NCBI GenBank assembly: GCA_965637545.1
Contig: OZ281496.1
Location: forward strand, 13,454,001-13,518,000
Reading direction: 5' to 3'
DNA from: Phallusia mammillata
Taxonomy: Eukaryota
Length of the DNA: 64,000 nt
In this document: positions 3,151-55,690 of the stretch, in pieces
Layout: every line of letters starts with the position of its first letter
Position numbering within the stretch: position 1 is the first letter of the stretch
Notes under the pieces: model-generated
Database searches by the model: none
What the model was told of the DNA's origin: nothing
Seen by the model: the letters and a program-made list of their open reading frames with translations, nothing else
Position numbers and translations under genes: made by a program

Positions 3151-4573
3151 TTGCTACTGTCTCTTCAAGTTAAATATTTTCTTTTGATTTAAACATTGAA
3201 TGGATTGAGCTCTGCTTTTTGGAATCGCGATTTCCGGTTCTCCACTGCTCTTTTGTTTGATCTGATGCTTGAATTCCAAATATCTTAGTAAATTGTAGCC
3301 ACCACTCACGATTCTCTCTATTACCACTTGAACTCTGCATGTTGATTTTACAGTAATCTCAGATGTAAACGTGTTGGTTTGACAAGTAACAAGGATATTA
3401 TCATGACAACACAGTCAAATGACAAAACCGCGCTAAAAAATGACCTAAAAACTTTTCGCTTCTTTACTCCCATAACTATTAAACAACGGATTGCACGTCT
3501 CAGAAATTTTCGGTGTTACATCTCCACGTTAAGTTCAAAATGACTTGTCTCACTGTTCCCCCTGTTGTGACGTTACAATCGCAATGTGCGTAACGGTAAA
3601 ACAGAAATACCATTGTCTGCATATTGCAATAATTGGGTTAATTTACTGTACAGCATTAAGTAAATTCTTCTGTGTTGCATTTTTAGACAGGACCGAATAT
3701 TCGGCCATGTAGCTGGCCAACAAATCTAGCAAAAATTCAACAGATAACGTCACTAAATAAATAAATTTGATTAGGGAACAAATTTCACAGACGGCAGTGT
3801 TAAGTATTAACCAGCAAGTTCATGATGATGATGTTCATTATAATGACAAAGAGTACGAACATGTTATTTCAGAAGAATTTGCACCTGGTCTTGGAAACAA
3901 GTATCGCTAGAATGTAAATCGAAACTTAAAAAAATGGTATAACTTTGGAAGTAGGAAATCTTAAAAGAGTAAACCTGGTATAATCTTTAACCACAAATTC
4001 TATGCCTTCATTTGGTTATTTAGTTACAACCACGAAATGCGACATTAGCCGAAAGCAGAGGCTCCTATTTGAAAATAATATTTCGCTAAAGTTCCAATAA
4101 ACGAAAATGTCGGTGCCATCTGAACGCAGATTCAGTGATGGAGTTCCATGGCAAATTAAAGATGGACCAGAGATAGAAAAGAAGGCTCTACCATATTCCA
4201 TGACGTAGCAATTCTCGGGGAAACTACCTACGTATCTATTAATCAAGACATATATTTAATCGATACTTTAATGGTAACGGTAACACAGTATATTCAAACA
4301 AAAACACCGTTACCGCAGTGACGTAATGGAAAAATACTGAGGTAATGGTCACGCACTGTTGTGCAGCTACATGCCGTTACTGTTACCGACAGGGTTGCCA
4401 TCGACTTAAAACCAAAAAAGTTTATTTTCATGCTGACAAAACAAACGTTTTTGAACAAATCTTTGCATTTGTACGAGCCATGACATGTCATATGCAATAT
4501 TTTGGCCAGAAACAATCTTTTGCAACTACTTGTTTGTAGAAAATACTTCGTGAATCTCACAAGAGCTTAGGTC

Positions 4574-4896: not shown

Positions 4897-5416
4897 ATGA
4901 ACATTTCTAAGACCCCTTTGACGGGAGCGAAGATAATGCCGGGCAGAAATTTTCTCCAAGCCTGTGCACTCCGCACCCAAACATTCCCAACCCGCGAGGC
5001 AGTCACCAGAAAAAGAAGAAGAGGGGCAACTCCGGAATGCCGCCTTTGCGGATTACCAGGCGGGACGCTGTCTCCTCTCCTGCCGATCTGCCGCCATTAG
5101 ACGAATAAGATCAGAACGCAGTTTCGCAGGTGGTGATTGACCACCTTTGCTGGAAGAGAAGAACTGAGCCAACTAACCCAACTCCTGCGGGCAGCGTCAT
5201 TAAACCCGACGTATATGCCAGATGCCCAGAAGGAGGCATTACATCTAGGATGCCGCCTTCATCTACGAAAGCGATGAGGACTCGTTGGTAAGAGCGCGGA
5301 TCAACGAGTTCAAGAAATACCGCGCTCTTTGCAAGACCATCGCTGATTTCCTTCGAGTCCCATTCAACAACAGTAGGGGCATGAGCTCTCCCACTATCAA
5401 TCCATCAACTAGGTAA
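4897..5416 (+). pseudogene. R2-like (RLE-type) non-LTR retrotransposon, C-terminal part: CCHC knuckle plus restriction-like endonuclease
   Basis: GRNFLQACALRTQTFPTR..CRLCG..TLSPLLPIC (decayed CCHC). TEPTNPTPAGSVIKPDV with KPD at 5202-5210. After a frameshift, DAAFIYESDEDSLVRARINEFKKY; stop at 5414-5416. Confidence 0.75.
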
Positions 5417-31600: not shown

Positions 31601-32092
31601 ATCTTAAAACATAAACCATAAAACAAAAGTAAGCAGGTAAATGGCGGTCGTTTGTGAAATAAGAATCTGCGATGCAGCCGTCCAAGCAAAAAGGTTGTGC
31701 ACCACTGCACTAAGGTTTTATTTTCTATTTTTGACGTAACAAAGAGCATTGTGTGAGTTGTTAGGAGGCAGAAAAACAACGAAATTTTGTTGGCAGCAAA
31801 AACATGTCTTTTTCATGTTTGTGTGCAGATGCTAAAAATACAATGCTTCATTTTGGTAAAAACTAAAAATTGCCGGAATTAAAGTAATCCTGAAACAAGT
31901 TGCTTGTATTATTATGTGAGAATTTAACAAAATGACAAACAGTAACAGTGGCCACTATGTTTGAAAAAACTAATTATGACTCACCAAACAAAATGCGTTA
32001 AAACCTAGGATGTTATTTGGGGTTCGACCAAATGCTGAAGAATATCGTAGGGGTTCGGCCGTTATAAAAAGGTTAAGTGATAGATCGCGAAG

Positions 32093-32108
32093 ATTCTATT
32101 TGAATAAG
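32093..32108 (+). other. Ascidian (Ciona-type) spliced-leader sequence ATTCTATTTGAATAAG at the head of a LINE
   Basis: Exact 16/16 match to the Ciona SL exon as recalled from the literature; about 80 nt upstream of the LINE ORF1 ATG. Confidence 0.8.
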
Positions 32109-32188
32109 GTTGCTTAGGTAACACTATTTAAATATAAAAAAATCTGATTTGCTGAGAAATTGTGTGAAAACTTGGGGATTATTGGAAA

Positions 32189-32902
32189 GATGTCTCAATT
32201 GAGGAAAAAAGGGTCGAACAATCTGTGGTTCTTGAAAGGATAGAATCCCTGAGGGATGAGGTTCGGGAGAGTAAAATCTCCACCGACTTAACCCTAAAAG
32301 AACTAATCAATGAGCTCAGGGAGATCCGCAAGAGCCAAACTTTCTTGCAGGAACAATATGATACGGTACAGACTCAGCTGGTAAACAACGAGGCTGAGAT
32401 GAAACTTCTAAAAACTGAAAACAGGGAACTCAAAAAGGCTGTAAAAGAACTACAAGTGCAAACAATCTCCAATGTCGAGAGCTTAAATGATCTCGAGCAA
32501 TATGGTCGAAGACCATGCTTGGAGTTCAAAGGCCTGCCCTATTCGGAAACGGAGCCTGAGATCAGTATCTCTCACCGACTTAGGCGAGTCTCTAAAGATC
32601 ATCCCCGTCCGGTAATCATTGCTAAATTTATGAGCCGCAAAGTGAGAGATGCCATTTACTCCAACCGGTATAGGCTGAAACAATCCAACAAAGGCGTAGC
32701 CCCTGGGAACCAAATTTTCATCAACGAGAGCCTGACAAAGAAGAACCGTGAGCGATTTAACAACTGTCTCCGGTTTAAGAGGGAGCACCAGTACCATCAC
32801 ATCTGGATTAGGAACGGAGCGACATTTCTGAAGAAGAATGGCAACAGCAACATTATTGCCACCCACAGTGACAAAGACTTGGTGAGGCATAAGATTTGTT
32901 AA
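32189..32902 (+). pseudogene. LINE ORF1 (coiled coil plus RRM/CTD-like)
   Basis: ATG near 32189 then a frameshift. LNDLEQYGRRPCLEFKGLP, SHRL, PVIIAKF, IFINESLT, HIWIRNG. Confidence 0.82.
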
Positions 32903-32999
32903 TACTTGTTGTATTTTAACCCACAAACTTTTACAACTTCTCTTCCACATGAAATGCAACAAATGCGCAAGTAATCTTCACAATAACACCCCATACTTT

Positions 33000-35158
33000 T
33001 GTACCATGCCTACTATCCTATTTACCATTCAGCAATGTCAGTAACTCAGAGCTAGAAAGTGCTATTTCACCAGTAAAATCACCATTTTCACCCTGTTTAC
33101 TGGCCAACATTGATCACACTCATTCATGTTACTATGATTGTGCATCCATGAACTATGCCCTAAAGAAACTTAGCAACAAAGATATGTTAATATTGCACAT
33201 AAACATTCGAAGTCTGAGAAAAAAACAAACCTGCTTTAGAACAACTTCTGTCTGATATGGTAAGATCCCCTGACATTGTTATGATATCTGAGACTAGAAT
33301 AACCCTAAATGGCATAACCACTGCTACTGATATAATGGGATATAATTTCCATCATACTGATACTTCACACAGTGCAGGAGGAGTAGGAGTTTATATAAAA
33401 TCACACATTTTTTATAGCATAAGATCTGATATTAAATTTACTGCTCCAGATACTGAAAGTCATTGGTTGCAACTTAAATTGAAACAAAAAAATGTAAAAT
33501 TGGGAGTAACATACAGACATCCCAAACATTCATTTGAAGTGTTCCAGGATGCACTATCATCAGTATTGCATAAGCTCAGTGATACCAACCATCCTGTATA
33601 TATATGTGGTGACTTTGACATAGATCTCATGCAATACAAGGATGTAAAAAGTCTTCAAAACTTTTTTATGATCTCTCACCATTAATATGTCAACCAACTC
33701 GTTTAACGAACCACAGCCAAACTCTTATTGACCACTTTTACACAAACAATGTACATATTACCTGCAAATCAGGAATACTGACTGCAGACATTTCTGACCA
33801 CTTGCCAACTTTTGTGTTAAAAATTCCTGAAAAGAAATTAGACCCGAATATAAAAGATGCTGTTATGAAAATACCACTGTTACCTGAAACTATATTACAT
33901 CAATTTTCTTCATTTAACCATGTATTTAACAAAATACTGCAACACCATGCACCACTGACCACAGTGAGTAGAAGAAGAAAATTGGCCAAGAAACCTTGGA
34001 TAAGCAAGAGTATTTATAAATCAATCACAGTAAAAAATAAAATGTATCATGCTTTATGTAGGTCAGGATTTTCAAGTACAAGTAAACATAACCAATATAA
34101 ACAGTATCGTACCAAGCTAAACCGCATTCTGAGAGAAGCTAAACATAAATACATCGAAAACGAACTGACAGATCACAGAAATGATGTTGGTGGAATGTGG
34201 AAAATTATTAATAGTTTGTTGTCACGAAAACAAACTTTACACAACGCTCCTGCCGGACTACAACTAGATGGAATATCACAATGCACTAAAGACCCAGTTT
34301 TAATTGCTAGCAATTTTAATCAGTTCTTTGCTAACATACAAGCAAATATGGCATTATCCATTCCACAGCCAGTTATGCCACCACTTGATAGTTCCTCCAT
34401 CATCCTTCTTCTTCTATGACACTACCCCAGATGAGGTGGAAATGTATATATCCACTCTTGACAGTCAAAAATCTGTGCCCAGTTATGAAATTCCTATTAA
34501 ATACATCAAAATGGTTAAAAGCATTATTTCACCTTTGCTCTCCGAGACTTTCAACTGGTGTATACAACATTGGGAATATTACCCCACTGAACTGAAAATT
34601 GCGGAAGTAATACCCATTCATAAATCAGACTCACAAGTTGAATGCACTAACTACAGACCAATTTCACTGCTATTCCCTTTTGCTAAGATTTTTGAAAAAA
34701 TTATGTATGATCGTTTGTATGACTACGTTGAAAAAAATGGAATGTTAACAACTCACCAGTATGGTTTTCGATGCAATCGATCCACCTTCCTGGCAAGTTA
34801 CGATATCCACGAAAAAGTGTTACCATACTGAGTTAGAGCATCAGTATGGAAAACGGGGAAGTCCCTCAGAACTGTTCCGTAGCTACTTAAGTCACCGCAA
34901 ACAATGCACACGCATAGCCAATGTAACATCACAACTGCTAAACGTTACCTGTGGTTGCCTTCAAGGTTCGTCACTGGCTCCTTTACTCTTCTCGCTTTGC
35001 ATTAACGATTTACCAACGGCATCTAAATTCACAACGAAACTCTTTGCGGATGACACGTGTTTAAGCATGCCATCAGAGTCGCTGACTGATCTACAGGCAA
35101 ACGTAAACAAGGAACTCGTTTATATTGACAACTTGATGCGCCACAACAATCTTTCGCT
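33000..35158 (+). pseudogene. LINE ORF2 (APE endonuclease plus reverse transcriptase), frameshifted
   Basis: NIRSL, SETR, GGVGVYIK, YRHP, CGDFDIDL, SDHLP; YRPISLL, QYGFR, QGSSLAPLLF..INDLP, FADDT. Confidence 0.9.
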
Positions 35159-38100
35159 TGTTCACTTTTTTGAAGTAGTGGGGTTGTAAGACGTGGAACT
35201 GAGCAACCTTGTGATGGTTCTTTCTGTTGTGATCGGCGCCACTTGCTCCACCAAACGTGGGCCTCATCCACATTGGCTTACAACCAGAGTTTGGAAGAAG
35301 TGGATACAACGGGGCGACATGCTTACCAAGTACCAGAACTTCAGGCATTAACTCGTGCCGAAAGCAATATTGTCGGGGACACAAGGCTTCAGGCGGGCAA
35401 GTAAAGTTCAGTTTTGAACTTGCGCGACTTCAGATTGTGAACCGTATTCGCGAGCAAATAAAACAGATGAGAAAGACTGGGAATGTATTGCACGAGATTA
35501 AAGAATCGACTCCAGCGGAGACCCAAAGCATGGCAATGAGGTTTATCTCTCTTGCAGTGAAACTACAGCAGACCCTCTCGGCGATCATCAGTTCGTTTTA
35601 TCTAAACTTGTTGCATGTGAACATAAACAGCCATCATGTGTTTTTCCTGGTGTTGCCAAAAAATCAAGATTCTGAAAATTGTCCATTTTTAATAAAGTTT
35701 GCAGCCGCTTTGTGTTTGGGTATTCATCCAGAAAATGTGTATCACGGTAGCTTCAAAAGACAATGGCACAATGACAAGTGGTATTTTTTTTCCTGTGCTT
35801 TACTGTCTCCTCGTGCTTTTTAAAATGCTTAACCGTGACCCAATAGTACAGTGGCAAACCTTACAATATCCGTTTTTACTTTCGCTCGCTGTCGTACGAT
35901 TGTTTCCATTTTTATATGACATTGTTGAACTTTTTAAACTAAATAAACTCGATGCTACTTGCCGGCGCTGACACGTTTTTCGGAACACAAATTTTATGAT
36001 TTCCAATAAGCTCTGCCTAGCCCACAATTAATATTTTTTCCTTTAGTGCAATTGTAGCATTGATTTGTCGAAAAGGGCTTGTGTGACGTATACGGGAATT
36101 CAATGAAACAGAGCATACCCATTGTAATGGCGCAGTTAGCGGATTTAAGCCGTAATTTGTGGTTTCAGAAGCGCAAACCTTAAAAAAAGCAAAAACGCCC
36201 AAAATAAACAGGGCTAAAAAAGCCAACCAACTACATAAACCGCCAAATTTTACAAAAGTTTTCGCCAAACCACCAGTTGCTATTTTTGGTGCCAACTACA
36301 TTCAAAAAAGCCAATTTTGAGGTTTTTGGCCGCCAAATTGGCAACCCTGTGTCGCGTTTGGTCCTTGGAGAGACATATTAACTCATTTAAGATTGCAAAG
36401 ATGTCAGCCAAGTAAGCAATTCTGTGAAGTTGGTTTTTGTCGCCGAACAGTGCGCAAAACTGTGCTTTGGATTTTAGATTCAAAATTGTTTTTAGTTTAT
36501 TACGAAGATCAAAAACACGTTTCAAAACTTTGACGGTGAGTCGGTACGGTTCTCAAATGGTCACCTATCATTTGTTAGGAATACAATGACGGATAAACGG
36601 GGCAAATCAGAACAATTATTTTGTTCAACTCGGTTGATTTTTATGTTAAAGTCGGAAGAAGCGTGCAGTGCTGTAAACACTGACCTATATCCTGTTTCCA
36701 TGGCTGTGGGTCCGATCGGACTTTTTTGCTTATATCGTCTCTGATAGGACGCTAAACAAATTTTATTTGCGTTTTAGCGGATCTCGTCAAAAGGGATTAG
36801 GAACTTTTGTTTGCTTCGATAGTTGTTGCCCATGTCTACTTTCAAACAGTTTTACAAAAGTATGGTTATTATGAATACCTTTAAAACGAAGTTATTTGCA
36901 ATTCAGCTATTTACCCTACAAAACAGAATTTTCAGGCGACCCTAGGTTGGGAAACACTGGTTTAAACAATAAATACACGAAGTATCTAAAACCGAAGCAA
37001 GAGCTGCACCTAACCTGCAGCTGTCGTGAAATGACTTGGGACCTACCAAAATTTTAAACGCTCAACACACCATATCAACCTAATTATTTCACTTAATGGT
37101 TTATGATTGACAGTAAGTAGACAATGTGTAACAGTACAACAGTAAAAAGTAGGCTACAAGGTGTGAAATGAAAAGTTTACTGACAGTGCAACCTCTACAA
37201 CACCACGACAATGCAGTTTGTAAACAATTTTTGACCTATTATAAAAATTTTGCCAAATTAAAATACCGATCGGTTTTGTCTGTATCTGAGTAACCCAATA
37301 CCGCAACAATGTTTAGTATGCTGTATGACAAAAACGGTCTTCCCAAACGACATTTAACAAACGGCATGTTTTTGGGTATGTTTTGTGTCCAGGTAGAGTA
37401 AAATCAGAACACTATCGCCTTTCACCCAGAAGTTAAAACGTTGCCGTTCCAAAAAGTCTTTAGTTGTTATCATCGAGGCTGGCTAGTGATCACCAATTAC
37501 GTTAAGCGGTAGTGTAACAAATAACTTATCGAAACAAAACCGTCTCATTTCGAACATTGTAATTCACGTTTGGCTGCGTGTGTCGCGTTGTTACACAACA
37601 GAAATTGCTAGACAAATTCTACACCAGATCGGCTATAAATCGTCTTGATGTTCTGTGATTGGACCCTGACTTTGTACACAAAGTTTGCGATGAGCCAGTA
37701 GTAGGGGAACAGGTGCAGTTCAGTGCCATATACCGGGTATGGGATTATTACATTTTATTCGTTATTGCCTGGTCGTTTAAAACAATTACGATTTTTTGGT
37801 TTGCACACCTAGTTCCTGAAATCTCATCTTGCTTGATTCTCTTCATAACGTGCGCAGTGTCGTTACATTAGCTGAACAAGATGGCACAAGAACCGTTTTG
37901 TTTTAAATGTACAAAACGAGGCAGGGATACCAACTGTGTGATGCTGCAATACTTGCCAAAAAGGACTTGTAACTTAATAGTGTCTACTTCTCGTGTGTAT
38001 CAACATGTGTCTTTTCAAATGTCCTCGATGGCTAAATGGTTTCTCACATATGTCACATCGATAGGGTTTCTCTCTCGTGTGGGTCGTCATGTGCATTGTT

Positions 38101-52499: not shown

Positions 52500-55400
52500 G
52501 TGGGGGTGATTTTCTGTGCTAGGTGAAAATCAAAGGTGAAATAATGCTTTTGACCATTTTGATGTATTTAATAGGAATTTCATGACTGGACACAGATTTA
52601 TGACTGTCAAGTGTGGATATATACATTTCCACCTCATCCGGGGTAGTGTCATAGAAGAAGAAGGATGATGGCTTGTGGTGGGGGATTACACTGGGCAACA
52701 AAAAAATATTTTTTTACTGGTGTCTATAATTTTTTACATGATTTTGACTATTTCCAGTGCCCTGATTTGAAAAATGCAATCGCTTTATCTGTATCACGTC
52801 TAGTTTTCCTGTTATGGTACATCCACGTTTGAAAAACAATGTATATGTATATGCTATAGTGAAACTGGTTTTGAGTATTTTATTTGAAATTACCGTTATT
52901 GCAAGAACAAAATTTTGAATTTAATTGTAAATGTTACAGGTGGACACTCCTAACCAACAAAATTCAACATATAAAACAAAAAAATGTTTCAAATTTGTAA
53001 GATTTTAGGTATATCGGGTATAGGCCTACACATTTACTTCTGTAACTTTCAGAAATGACTGGCAGCATTATCGTCCCGTTTAATTGACCAACAGCAGTTA
53101 GCCAGGACCACATTATTTAGACACGTCTCGTTTTACTGATATCCTGTTGGAAGCTTTCAGCTTAATTCTCATCATTTATATCCCTTACGTTTTAAGGGAA
53201 GTGTAGCTTTATGCTTATTTTCGTACCGAATTTTTCAGATCGCTTAATAACTTAGTTATGTACTCTTTTCTAATAATTTCAGTCCCTTTCTACTATTTTT
53301 TTTCATTACTGCAATATTCCAGTCAACATTAGGTAAGTGGAGCCCATTGCTTGCCCTAAACCCCTAAAGTAACATCGAAGTGTACAAGATATGCACATTT
53401 GAAACAGATCTTTTTTTTTTCTTTTTAGTTGTGTTGTATGGATATTCACCAGTAAGGTAGCATAAAACATCTTGTTAATTCATGCAACACCTTATAGATG
53501 ACCTAGCCACTATTAATTTTAGCTTTACCACCTTGCTTTACAAGTCTGAAAATCACTCCATAAAACACGTATAGTTTAAAGTTACCACTAACTTGTACCA
53601 ACCATTTTTAGGCAGAGCATAAGCATAGAACACATATTCATGCTATGAAACTGACTGCACTGTAGGAAATTGATGTGTATAATGTAACAAAGCTTTAACA
53701 AACACATAAAAGCATGATTTTAATGTCATTGAATCAATATGGTCATAAATTTTGATTTTGTAAATAACTTAAAAAGTTGATCTGATTGAAGAAAACCGTA
53801 ATGATTTTTGAAATCAGCACCCCAAAATTAGTCAATATCAGTTTTAACATTAAAGACACCAAAAATTGTGTTGGCCAGTGTTATCAGGTGGTGGCATGAT
53901 TGGCTGTGGAATAGATGATGCCATATTTGCTCTTATGTTGGCAAAGAACTGGTTAAAATTTGTTGGCAACAGTGATTGGGTCAGTAGTGCAATGTGCAGT
54001 ACCATCTAGTTTTAGTTCACAAACTTTTGTAAAGTTTGTTTTCGGGACAACAATCTATTAATGATTTTGCACATTTCACCAATATCGTTTCTGTGATCTG
54101 TTAGTTCTTTTTCAATGTACCTGTGCTTAGCATCTCTTAAAATGTGATTGAGCTTGTTACGGTACTGTTTATATTGGTGGTATTTGCTTGTACTTGAAAA
54201 GCCCGACTTACATAATGCATGATACATTTTTTTTTTGGATTGACTTATAAATTCCCTTGCTTATCCAAGGTTTTTTGGCCAATTTCCTTCTTCTGCTAGT
54301 CATTGTCGTTAATGGTATTTTGTGGAATAAATGATTAAATGAAGTGAATTTGTGTAATATGGTTTCAGTTGACAGTGGTAAGTTCATAACAGCATCTTTT
54401 ATGTCAGAAATCAAATTTTCACTCTGAAATAGGGTCTCATTTCTTCTCAGATTTTTTTCTGTTTTATCACAGCAAGTTGATTGCAATAACACAAAAGTTG
54501 GCAGGTGGTCAGAAATGTCTGCAGTCAGTATTCCTGATTTGCAGGTAATATTTACATTGTTTGTGTAAAAATGAGCAATAAGAGTTTGGCTATTGTTCGT
54601 TAAACGTGTCGGTTGACATATTAATGGTGATAGATCATAAATTTGCAAAGAATCTAAAAAGTTTTGAATGCTTTTTACTTCCTTGTATTGCATGAGATCT
54701 ATGTTAAAGTCACCACATATATAAACAGGATGATTGGTATCACTAAGCCTATGTAAAACTGATGATAGTGCATCCTGGAACCCTTCAAATGAATGTTTGG
54801 GGTGTCTGTATATTACTCCCAATATAACATTTTTTTTGTTTCAATTTAAGTTGCAACCAAAGACTTTCAGTATCTGGGGAAACAAGTTCAATATCTGATC
54901 TTATACTATATGAAATGTGTGATTTTATATAAACTCCTACTCCTCCTGAACTATTTGAGGTATCAGTATGATGGAAGTTATATCCCATGATATCAGTAGC
55001 AGTGGTTATGCTGTTAAGGGTATTTCTGGTCTCAGATATCATAACAATGTCAGGGGATCTTACCATATCAGACAGGAATTGTTCTAAAGCAGGTTTGTTT
55101 TTTCTTAGGCTTCGAATGTTTGTGTGCATTATAAACATGTCTTTGTTACTGAGTTTGTTCAGGGCATAGTTCAAGGATGCACAATCATAATAATCAGAAT
55201 GGGTGTGATCAATGTTTGCCAGTAAATAGGGTGCATATGGAGTTTTTACTGGTGAAATGGCATTTATTATCTCGGAGTTACTGACATTGCTAAATGGTAA
55301 ATACGTCAATAGGCATAACTATGGGGTGTTATTGTGGAGATTTACTGTATATTTGTTGCATTTCATGTGGAAAAGAAGTGGTAATCAGTACTGGGGTTTG

Positions 55401-55690
55401 CATACTACAAGTATTAACAAATCTTATGTCTTACCAAATCTTTGTCGCTGCAGATGGCAATGATGTTGCTGTTGTCATCCTTCTTCAGAAATGTCACTCT
55501 GTTCCTTGTCCAGATGTGATGATGCTCCCTCTTAAACCGGAGACAGCTATTAAATCTCTCACGGTTCTTCTTGGTCAAGCTCTCATTAATAAAAATTTGA
55601 TTCCCATGGGCTACGCCTTTGTTCGATTGTTTTAGTTTGTACCGGTTGGAGTAAATGGCATCTCTCATCTTCCGATTGATGTAATTTCAA
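52500..55690 (-). mobile_element. Second copy of the CR1/L2-group LINE family (ORF1 C-terminus, APE, start of RT)
   Basis: Peptides near-identical to the 32.2-34.5 kb copy (IFINESLTKKNRERFN, CGDFNIDL, SDHLPTFV, YDTTPDEVEMY). Interrupted at 52689-53880. Confidence 0.88.
52689..53880. mobile_element. Non-autonomous DNA transposon with CACTG...CAGTG ends (EnSpm/CACTA-like)
   Basis: CACTGGGCAACAAAAAA / TTGTGTTGGCCAGTG; TTA on both sides. The LINE sequence rejoins across it when compared with about 34370-34420. Confidence 0.7.

Follow-up and report, generated by a model that had tools for sequence, protein, structure and literature searches.

A decayed LINE in the ascidian Phallusia mammillata begins exactly with the host spliced leader

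Why should a decayed retrotransposon in a sea-squirt genome begin with the 16-nt spliced leader (SL) that the host splices onto its own messenger RNAs? The question is raised by a 64,000-nt stretch of Phallusia mammillata DNA (GenBank assembly GCA_965637545.1, contig OZ281496.1, positions 13,454,001 to 13,518,000 of the forward strand), referred to here as the window. An initial annotation, made from the sequence alone, described a LINE copy in the window that starts with the Ciona SL, continues through a leader of about 80 nt into ORF1 and ORF2, lies behind unrelated hAT-like debris, and is not an SL RNA gene because no Sm-site-like sequence follows. It inferred that the LINE RNA had acquired the SL before reverse transcription, and suggested that the family might use trans-splicing for capping and 5'-end definition, for example by launching from host read-through transcripts. 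We find that the locus is as described. The interpretation is supported only in part: its core, that the LINE RNA carried the SL at its 5' end before reverse transcription, holds, whereas the route by which the SL arrived remains inferred.

Results

Structure of the locus

The features of the window, together with related loci elsewhere in the genome, are collected in Table 1. The 16-mer ATTCTATTTGAATAAG is the only match in the window even when two mismatches are allowed, and the LINE that follows it is decayed, with ORF1 frameshifted after 17 codons and ORF2 broken into pieces in several frames. Pfam searches identified a Baculo_FP_2nd-like domain in ORF1, and Exo_endo_phos and RVT_1 in ORF2. 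The same ORF2 domains are found in the intact relative L076 and in 539 homologues at E<=1e-10, and the nearest Atlas cluster is named 'mobile element jockey'. The element is thus an APE-type LINE, jockey-like by cluster name rather than by a tree. Intact relatives encode an ORF1 of 258 aa, and the full-length element is about 4.7 kb, so that the window copy, in which homology to relatives stops at element nt 3278 of about 4700, lacks its last ~1.4 kb and the (TTGAC)n tail.

The upstream sequence is unrelated to the LINE. It comprises the end of a very abundant repeat, many copies of which, at 96% identity, end in ...GGTTAAGAACCACTG, followed by a short unique spacer. This repeat, also represented by loci L022-L030, looks like the terminal inverted repeat of a cut-and-paste transposon; its attribution to hAT rests on the initial annotation alone.

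Table 1. Features of the window (first six rows) and loci outside it (C1, C2, C3 and C6 are contigs of the same genome; C3 includes the window).
Feature	Location	Strand	Description
5' flank	32000..32092	+	Not part of the LINE; end of a very abundant cut-and-paste-like repeat (32000-32077) and a 15-nt unique spacer ending in G at 32092, the candidate cap-derived base
SL	32093..32108	+	Exact host spliced-leader exon (16 nt), forming the 5' terminus of the LINE
5' leader	32109..32190	+	82 nt; starts with the family-conserved GTTGCTTAGGT; the GT at +17/+18 is invariant in all related families
ORF1	32191..32902	+	ATG at 32191; coiled coil and Baculo_FP_2nd-like C-terminal domain; open frame 32225-32902
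ORF2 remnant	32949..35159	+	ATG at 32949; APE endonuclease at 33257-33685, reverse transcriptase at about 34616-35105; homology to relatives breaks at 35159
Second LINE copy	52527..55674	-	5'-truncated and rearranged copy of the same family (element nt ~590-2580), without a head
SL RNA gene array (L084)	C3:11190562-11265051		Tandem units of 555 bp
Element in SL RNA genes	C3:11206000, 11214224, 11221949 (L090-L092); C2:7309948 (L089); C6:13621027 and C6:13665589		About 6.6-7.7 kb; L089 is a dispersed copy
Intact young LINE copy (L076)	C1:2615100-2622600		Insertion polymorphism
ORF1 copy	C3:7354365-7355075	-	100% identical to L076 from residue 22 onward, in a 324-aa open frame, so its N-terminus is replaced by other sequence
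ORF1 cluster	C3:11.4-17.7 Mb		Includes the window
Tandem repeat (L038-L043)	C1:2628824-2690753		Unit of about 5937 bp, each with an SL followed by a decayed copy of the 45-nt unit described in the text
Repeat with internal SL (L034-L036)	C1:1154677, C1:1550020, C1:2181258		Conserved upstream sequence (...tttctaacga..tgtttc..aaac), then the SL, then one or two decayed or truncated SL relics in tandem

The 16-mer is the spliced leader of this species

The 16-mer is the published Ciona SL (PMC1488885 Table 1; PMC7986045), and it occurs 3860 times in this 240-Mb genome, against 0 for the reversed control. A search with a Ciona SL RNA pattern, SL+GT+N(2-25)+AGCTTTGG, gave 0 matches, but a search for SL+GT revealed a tandem array of SL RNA genes on the same chromosome, 2.2 Mb from the window. 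Each unit reads ...acaacggc|SL|GTAAGCATCAGCACATCTTTTTGTGCCATTTTTTCG, that is, an SL exon, a consensus GTAAGC donor and a short U-rich intron. The SL RNA intron thus differs from that of Ciona, whose unit is 264 bp with the Sm motif AGCTTTGG, which is absent here. The window locus, which reads SL|GTTGCTTAGG and continues into ORF1, has no similarity to the array unit, is present in the window as a single copy, and is not an SL RNA gene.

The SL is the 5' end of the element

A search with window positions 32000-32400 found about 20 copies whose similarity begins at the SL, and their flanks show that these represent 15 independent insertions. Thirteen have a complete or nearly complete SL and two keep only its last 9-10 nt; all have the junction SL|GTTGC(T/C)TAGG, and all have unrelated upstream DNA. 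The window copy (L001) and three others (L002-L004) share a 27-nt unique spacer and are segmental duplicates of one insertion. The subfamilies differ by up to 27% in the next 300 nt. Every SL variant is private to one insertion (L008, L009, L010, L013 and L021 are examples of copies with a mutated or truncated genomic SL), whereas the neighbouring leader carries subfamily-specific changes. Loci with a mutated or truncated genomic SL include C3:13156795, C6:22905627, C3:16657520, C3:12450196 and C3:26645267.

Young copies give the same boundary. L076 and L077 are 99.8% identical from SL nt 1 to a (TTGAC)n tail, about 4690 nt, and L080 and L083 are 99.4% identical over the same span, with the alignment starting one base inside the SL; both ORFs are open in L076 and L080. 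The (TTGAC)n tail is present in four copies, in two of which, L077 and L083, target-site duplications (AAAGT and CTATGG, respectively) enclose SL plus LINE. When public sequencing runs were compared with L076, a contig from a DNA-like run (X7) was found to join position 240 to position 4977 with ATGC between, representing an empty allele that lacks both SL and LINE. It also lacks the junction filler of the filled allele, which has 32 nt (with an internal 12-nt duplication) between the old flank and the SL and 14 nt (GTGCTA twice) after the tail. Contigs from other copies diverge exactly at SL nt 1. The initial annotation had named two findings that would overturn it, use of a different SL by the species and conserved element sequence upstream of the 16-mer, and neither was found: no copy shows element sequence upstream of the SL, and no copy with an outron and AG acceptor was found.

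The base immediately before the SL is G in 9 of 13 LINE insertions (p 9e-5) and in 20 of 34 non-redundant SL sites sampled on contig C1 (p 2e-7), against a background of 0.185 for G, whereas the SL RNA gene has C at this position. An untemplated G at the 5' end of full-length L1 insertions and retrocopies is the recognised trace of reverse transcriptase copying the cap (PMC4038843 and papers cited there); here it precedes the SL, and SL nt 1 was therefore the capped end of the RNA template.

SL-bearing sequences elsewhere in the genome

Of the 3860 SL sites only 12 are followed by GTTGCTTAGG; all 12 were inspected and none lies in the array. About 490 are followed by GT, and these are mostly the gene array. 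Roughly 3300 are dispersed and head unrelated sequences, and in a sample of 40 such sites (L031-L070, on C1) both flanks are mostly unrelated from site to site, implying that many different SL-bearing RNAs have been copied into this genome.

About 30% of the sampled sites read SL + 3 nt + CTGATGATGCC..(loop)..GGCGAAATATAT, with similarity ending about 45 nt after the SL, and one of them, L037, holds two such units head to head as a palindrome. The core resembles the hammerhead CUGAUGA...GAAA, but Rfam gave no hammerhead match at E<=1 and there is an extra U before helix II, so that a hammerhead identity is no more than a possibility. The idea that this unit ends in the (TTGAC)n tail of the LINE was not supported, such a tail being seen in 4/12 cases against 4/22 in controls.

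A further element is inserted in SL RNA genes of the array after SL+GTAAGCAT, with the junction ...GCAT|ATACCTGACTT, and its dispersed copy L089 starts exactly at SL nt 1 behind unrelated flank. This indicates co-transcription from the SL gene promoter followed by retrotransposition. No ORF1 similarity to the LINE studied here appears in its first 1.5 kb.

Related LINE families carry the same head

A search with ORF1 found 127 matches in this genome, 73 of them on C3, which makes up 13% of the genome; most of these lie in the 6 Mb next to the SL RNA gene array, and several are segmental duplicates. For a further five ORF1 loci, 29-41% identical to this family, an exact SL could be placed upstream, about 40-75 nt before the inferred ORF1 start in four and nearly 700 nt before it in one. 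Outside this genome, an ENA assembly contig (L087; ORF2 44% identical) has the exact SL 78 nt before ORF1, and a JGI metagenome contig (L096; ORF1 53% identical) has a 15/16 SL 48 nt before ORF1. Non-ascidian relatives (L088, L093, L094, L095, L097 and L098) have no SL. In an alignment of seven heads the invariant block is G(-1) + SL + GT, the SL being 16/16 in six heads and 15/16 in L096.

Two lineages of the family have double heads. L018/19, which are 98% identical to L076 over the first ~1.8 kb of the element, read SL+GAACTATTTGAATAAG+LINE, and L020 reads SL-like + 13 nt + SL + LINE. Searches for the parents of these copies found only the copies themselves. Probable RNA-seq contigs (runs X1-X3) match ORF1 and ORF2 with 0 mismatches at depth 3-5, but they do not cover nt 273-600 of L076 and so do not show the 5' end of the RNA.

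Discussion

How did the SL come to head this LINE? What the data establish is that the SL belongs to the inserted DNA and marks nucleotide 1 of the RNA template, and that reverse transcription ran to the cap and often added one G; that leader-capped LINE RNA was retrotransposed is well supported. The source of the leader is a matter of inference. We consider trans-splicing the most likely source, with a probability of about 0.6. It is the normal way in which RNAs acquire this sequence, and trans-spliced RNAs are commonly retrocopied in this genome; it explains the sharp boundary of perfect identity and the private nature of all SL variants. In this view, LINE-containing transcripts, probably read-through transcripts from upstream of a genomic copy, would be trans-spliced at the AG that ends the resident SL (AAG|GTTGC), which would cut off the flank, supply a cap and a defined 5' end, and regenerate the same head in every generation. 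Use of an upstream AG in the flank would instead give a double head, as in L018/19 and L020, and these two lineages are the only support for launching from read-through transcripts. Some observations fit less well. On present evidence there is no RNA that spans the 5' end, and no parental copy with an outron; AAG|G is a weak 3' splice site, and the branch point would have to lie in variable flank. Trans-splicing does not renew the invariant GT at +17/+18, so that selection or another origin is needed to explain these two bases, and the 32 nt of filler in the L076 insertion lies between the old flank and the SL.

Could the head simply be inherited? The SL may have been captured once in the ancestor of these families and may now be no more than the first 16 nt of a 5' UTR transcribed from an internal promoter that starts at SL nt 1, with no trans-splicing in the present life cycle. 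The block G(-1)+SL+GT, and a TA(A)GG motif a few bases later, are shared by families whose ORF1s are only 28-53% identical, including two other assemblies, which points to inheritance from a common ancestor. SL nt 1-5 (ATTCT) fit the A-N-W-Y-Y part of an initiator on our reading of the sequence, many LINEs have internal promoters that start at nt 1, and the conserved 11 nt after the SL show that selection acts on the head in any case. Against this, 16/16 conservation (15/16 in L096) across such divergent families, with a sharp drop two bases after the splice junction, is unusual for a promoter element, no shared derived SL variants are seen, and an internal promoter cannot produce the double heads, which occur in 2 of about 13 lineages, one of them in the young subfamily. 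We regard this alternative as doubtful, although the present data do not distinguish renewal of the SL in each generation from inheritance from the parent copy.

An origin inside an SL RNA gene, just after SL+GT(A)(A), with co-transcription from the SL gene promoter, seems less likely still but cannot be excluded. The SL+GT head would then be a relic of the gene, not of a spliced exon. The SL is followed by GT in every related family, and by GTA or GTAA in four of them, which matches SL|GTAAGC, whereas only 4 of the 34 SL sites sampled on C1 have GT; the element of L089-L092 takes just such a route, and ORF1 matches cluster next to the array. However, none of the 15 insertions has the SL gene upstream sequence, or the SL intron after its tail, the endonuclease is APE-type with varied targets, and because the GT families share ancestry their GT counts as one event, with a chance of about 0.1. 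Insertion of an SL-less LINE next to pre-existing SLs is very unlikely. Thousands of dispersed SLs exist, and a double head could be read as insertion behind one of them, but this is contradicted for L076, whose empty allele has no SL, and for L077, whose target-site duplication encloses the SL, as does that of L083; the sequences after the tails are unrelated to anything that usually follows an SL.

Several known systems offer comparisons. Relict SLs are reported on dinoflagellate retrogenes (e.g. PMC12014239; Slamovits and Keeling 2008), where a DNA-encoded SL at the 5' end likewise shows that trans-spliced RNAs were reverse-transcribed, and tandem relic SLs arise from repeated rounds; here the tagged RNA is the retrotransposon's own, in a chordate, and the head is fixed at one junction across a whole group of LINE families. 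NeSL-1 of C. elegans (NeSL is discussed in PMC4640811) and SLACS, CZAR and CRE of trypanosomatids are LINEs physically linked to the SL sequence, but they carry a restriction-like endonuclease and sit inside SL RNA genes, whereas the present family has an APE endonuclease, is dispersed, and carries only the SL exon plus GT, with unrelated flanks. In function there is a parallel with R2 and with the Pr77 of L1Tc (PMC8190864, PMC1874656), which solve the same problem of defining a 5' end, and of expression, for a LINE that lacks an upstream promoter and is co-transcribed with host sequence. There, self-cleavage, as by the HDV-like ribozyme of R2, or an internal promoter is used; the device proposed here is the host's SL trans-splicing, which would also supply the cap. 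Literature searches found no report of SL-headed LINEs in tunicates, in a paper collection that is incomplete.

A more far-reaching possibility, which we put forward tentatively, is that SL trans-splicing is a regular step in the life cycle of a whole group of ascidian LINEs. Promoter-less copies would be launched from host read-through transcripts, the host machinery would trim the flank and supply the cap, and the copied SL, with its terminal AG and the conserved GT behind it, would rebuild the acceptor for the next round, giving a self-renewing 5' end borrowed from the host, in a chordate.

LINEs must be transcribed without carrying an upstream promoter and must define their 5' ends, and the known answers are internal promoters and self-cleaving ribozymes. 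The SL head is a built-in marker of full-length, cap-to-tail retrotransposition. A chordate LINE group that uses, or at least once used and has kept, the host's spliced leader would represent a third answer, and would also show that SL trans-splicing shapes genome content in tunicates, not only in dinoflagellates.
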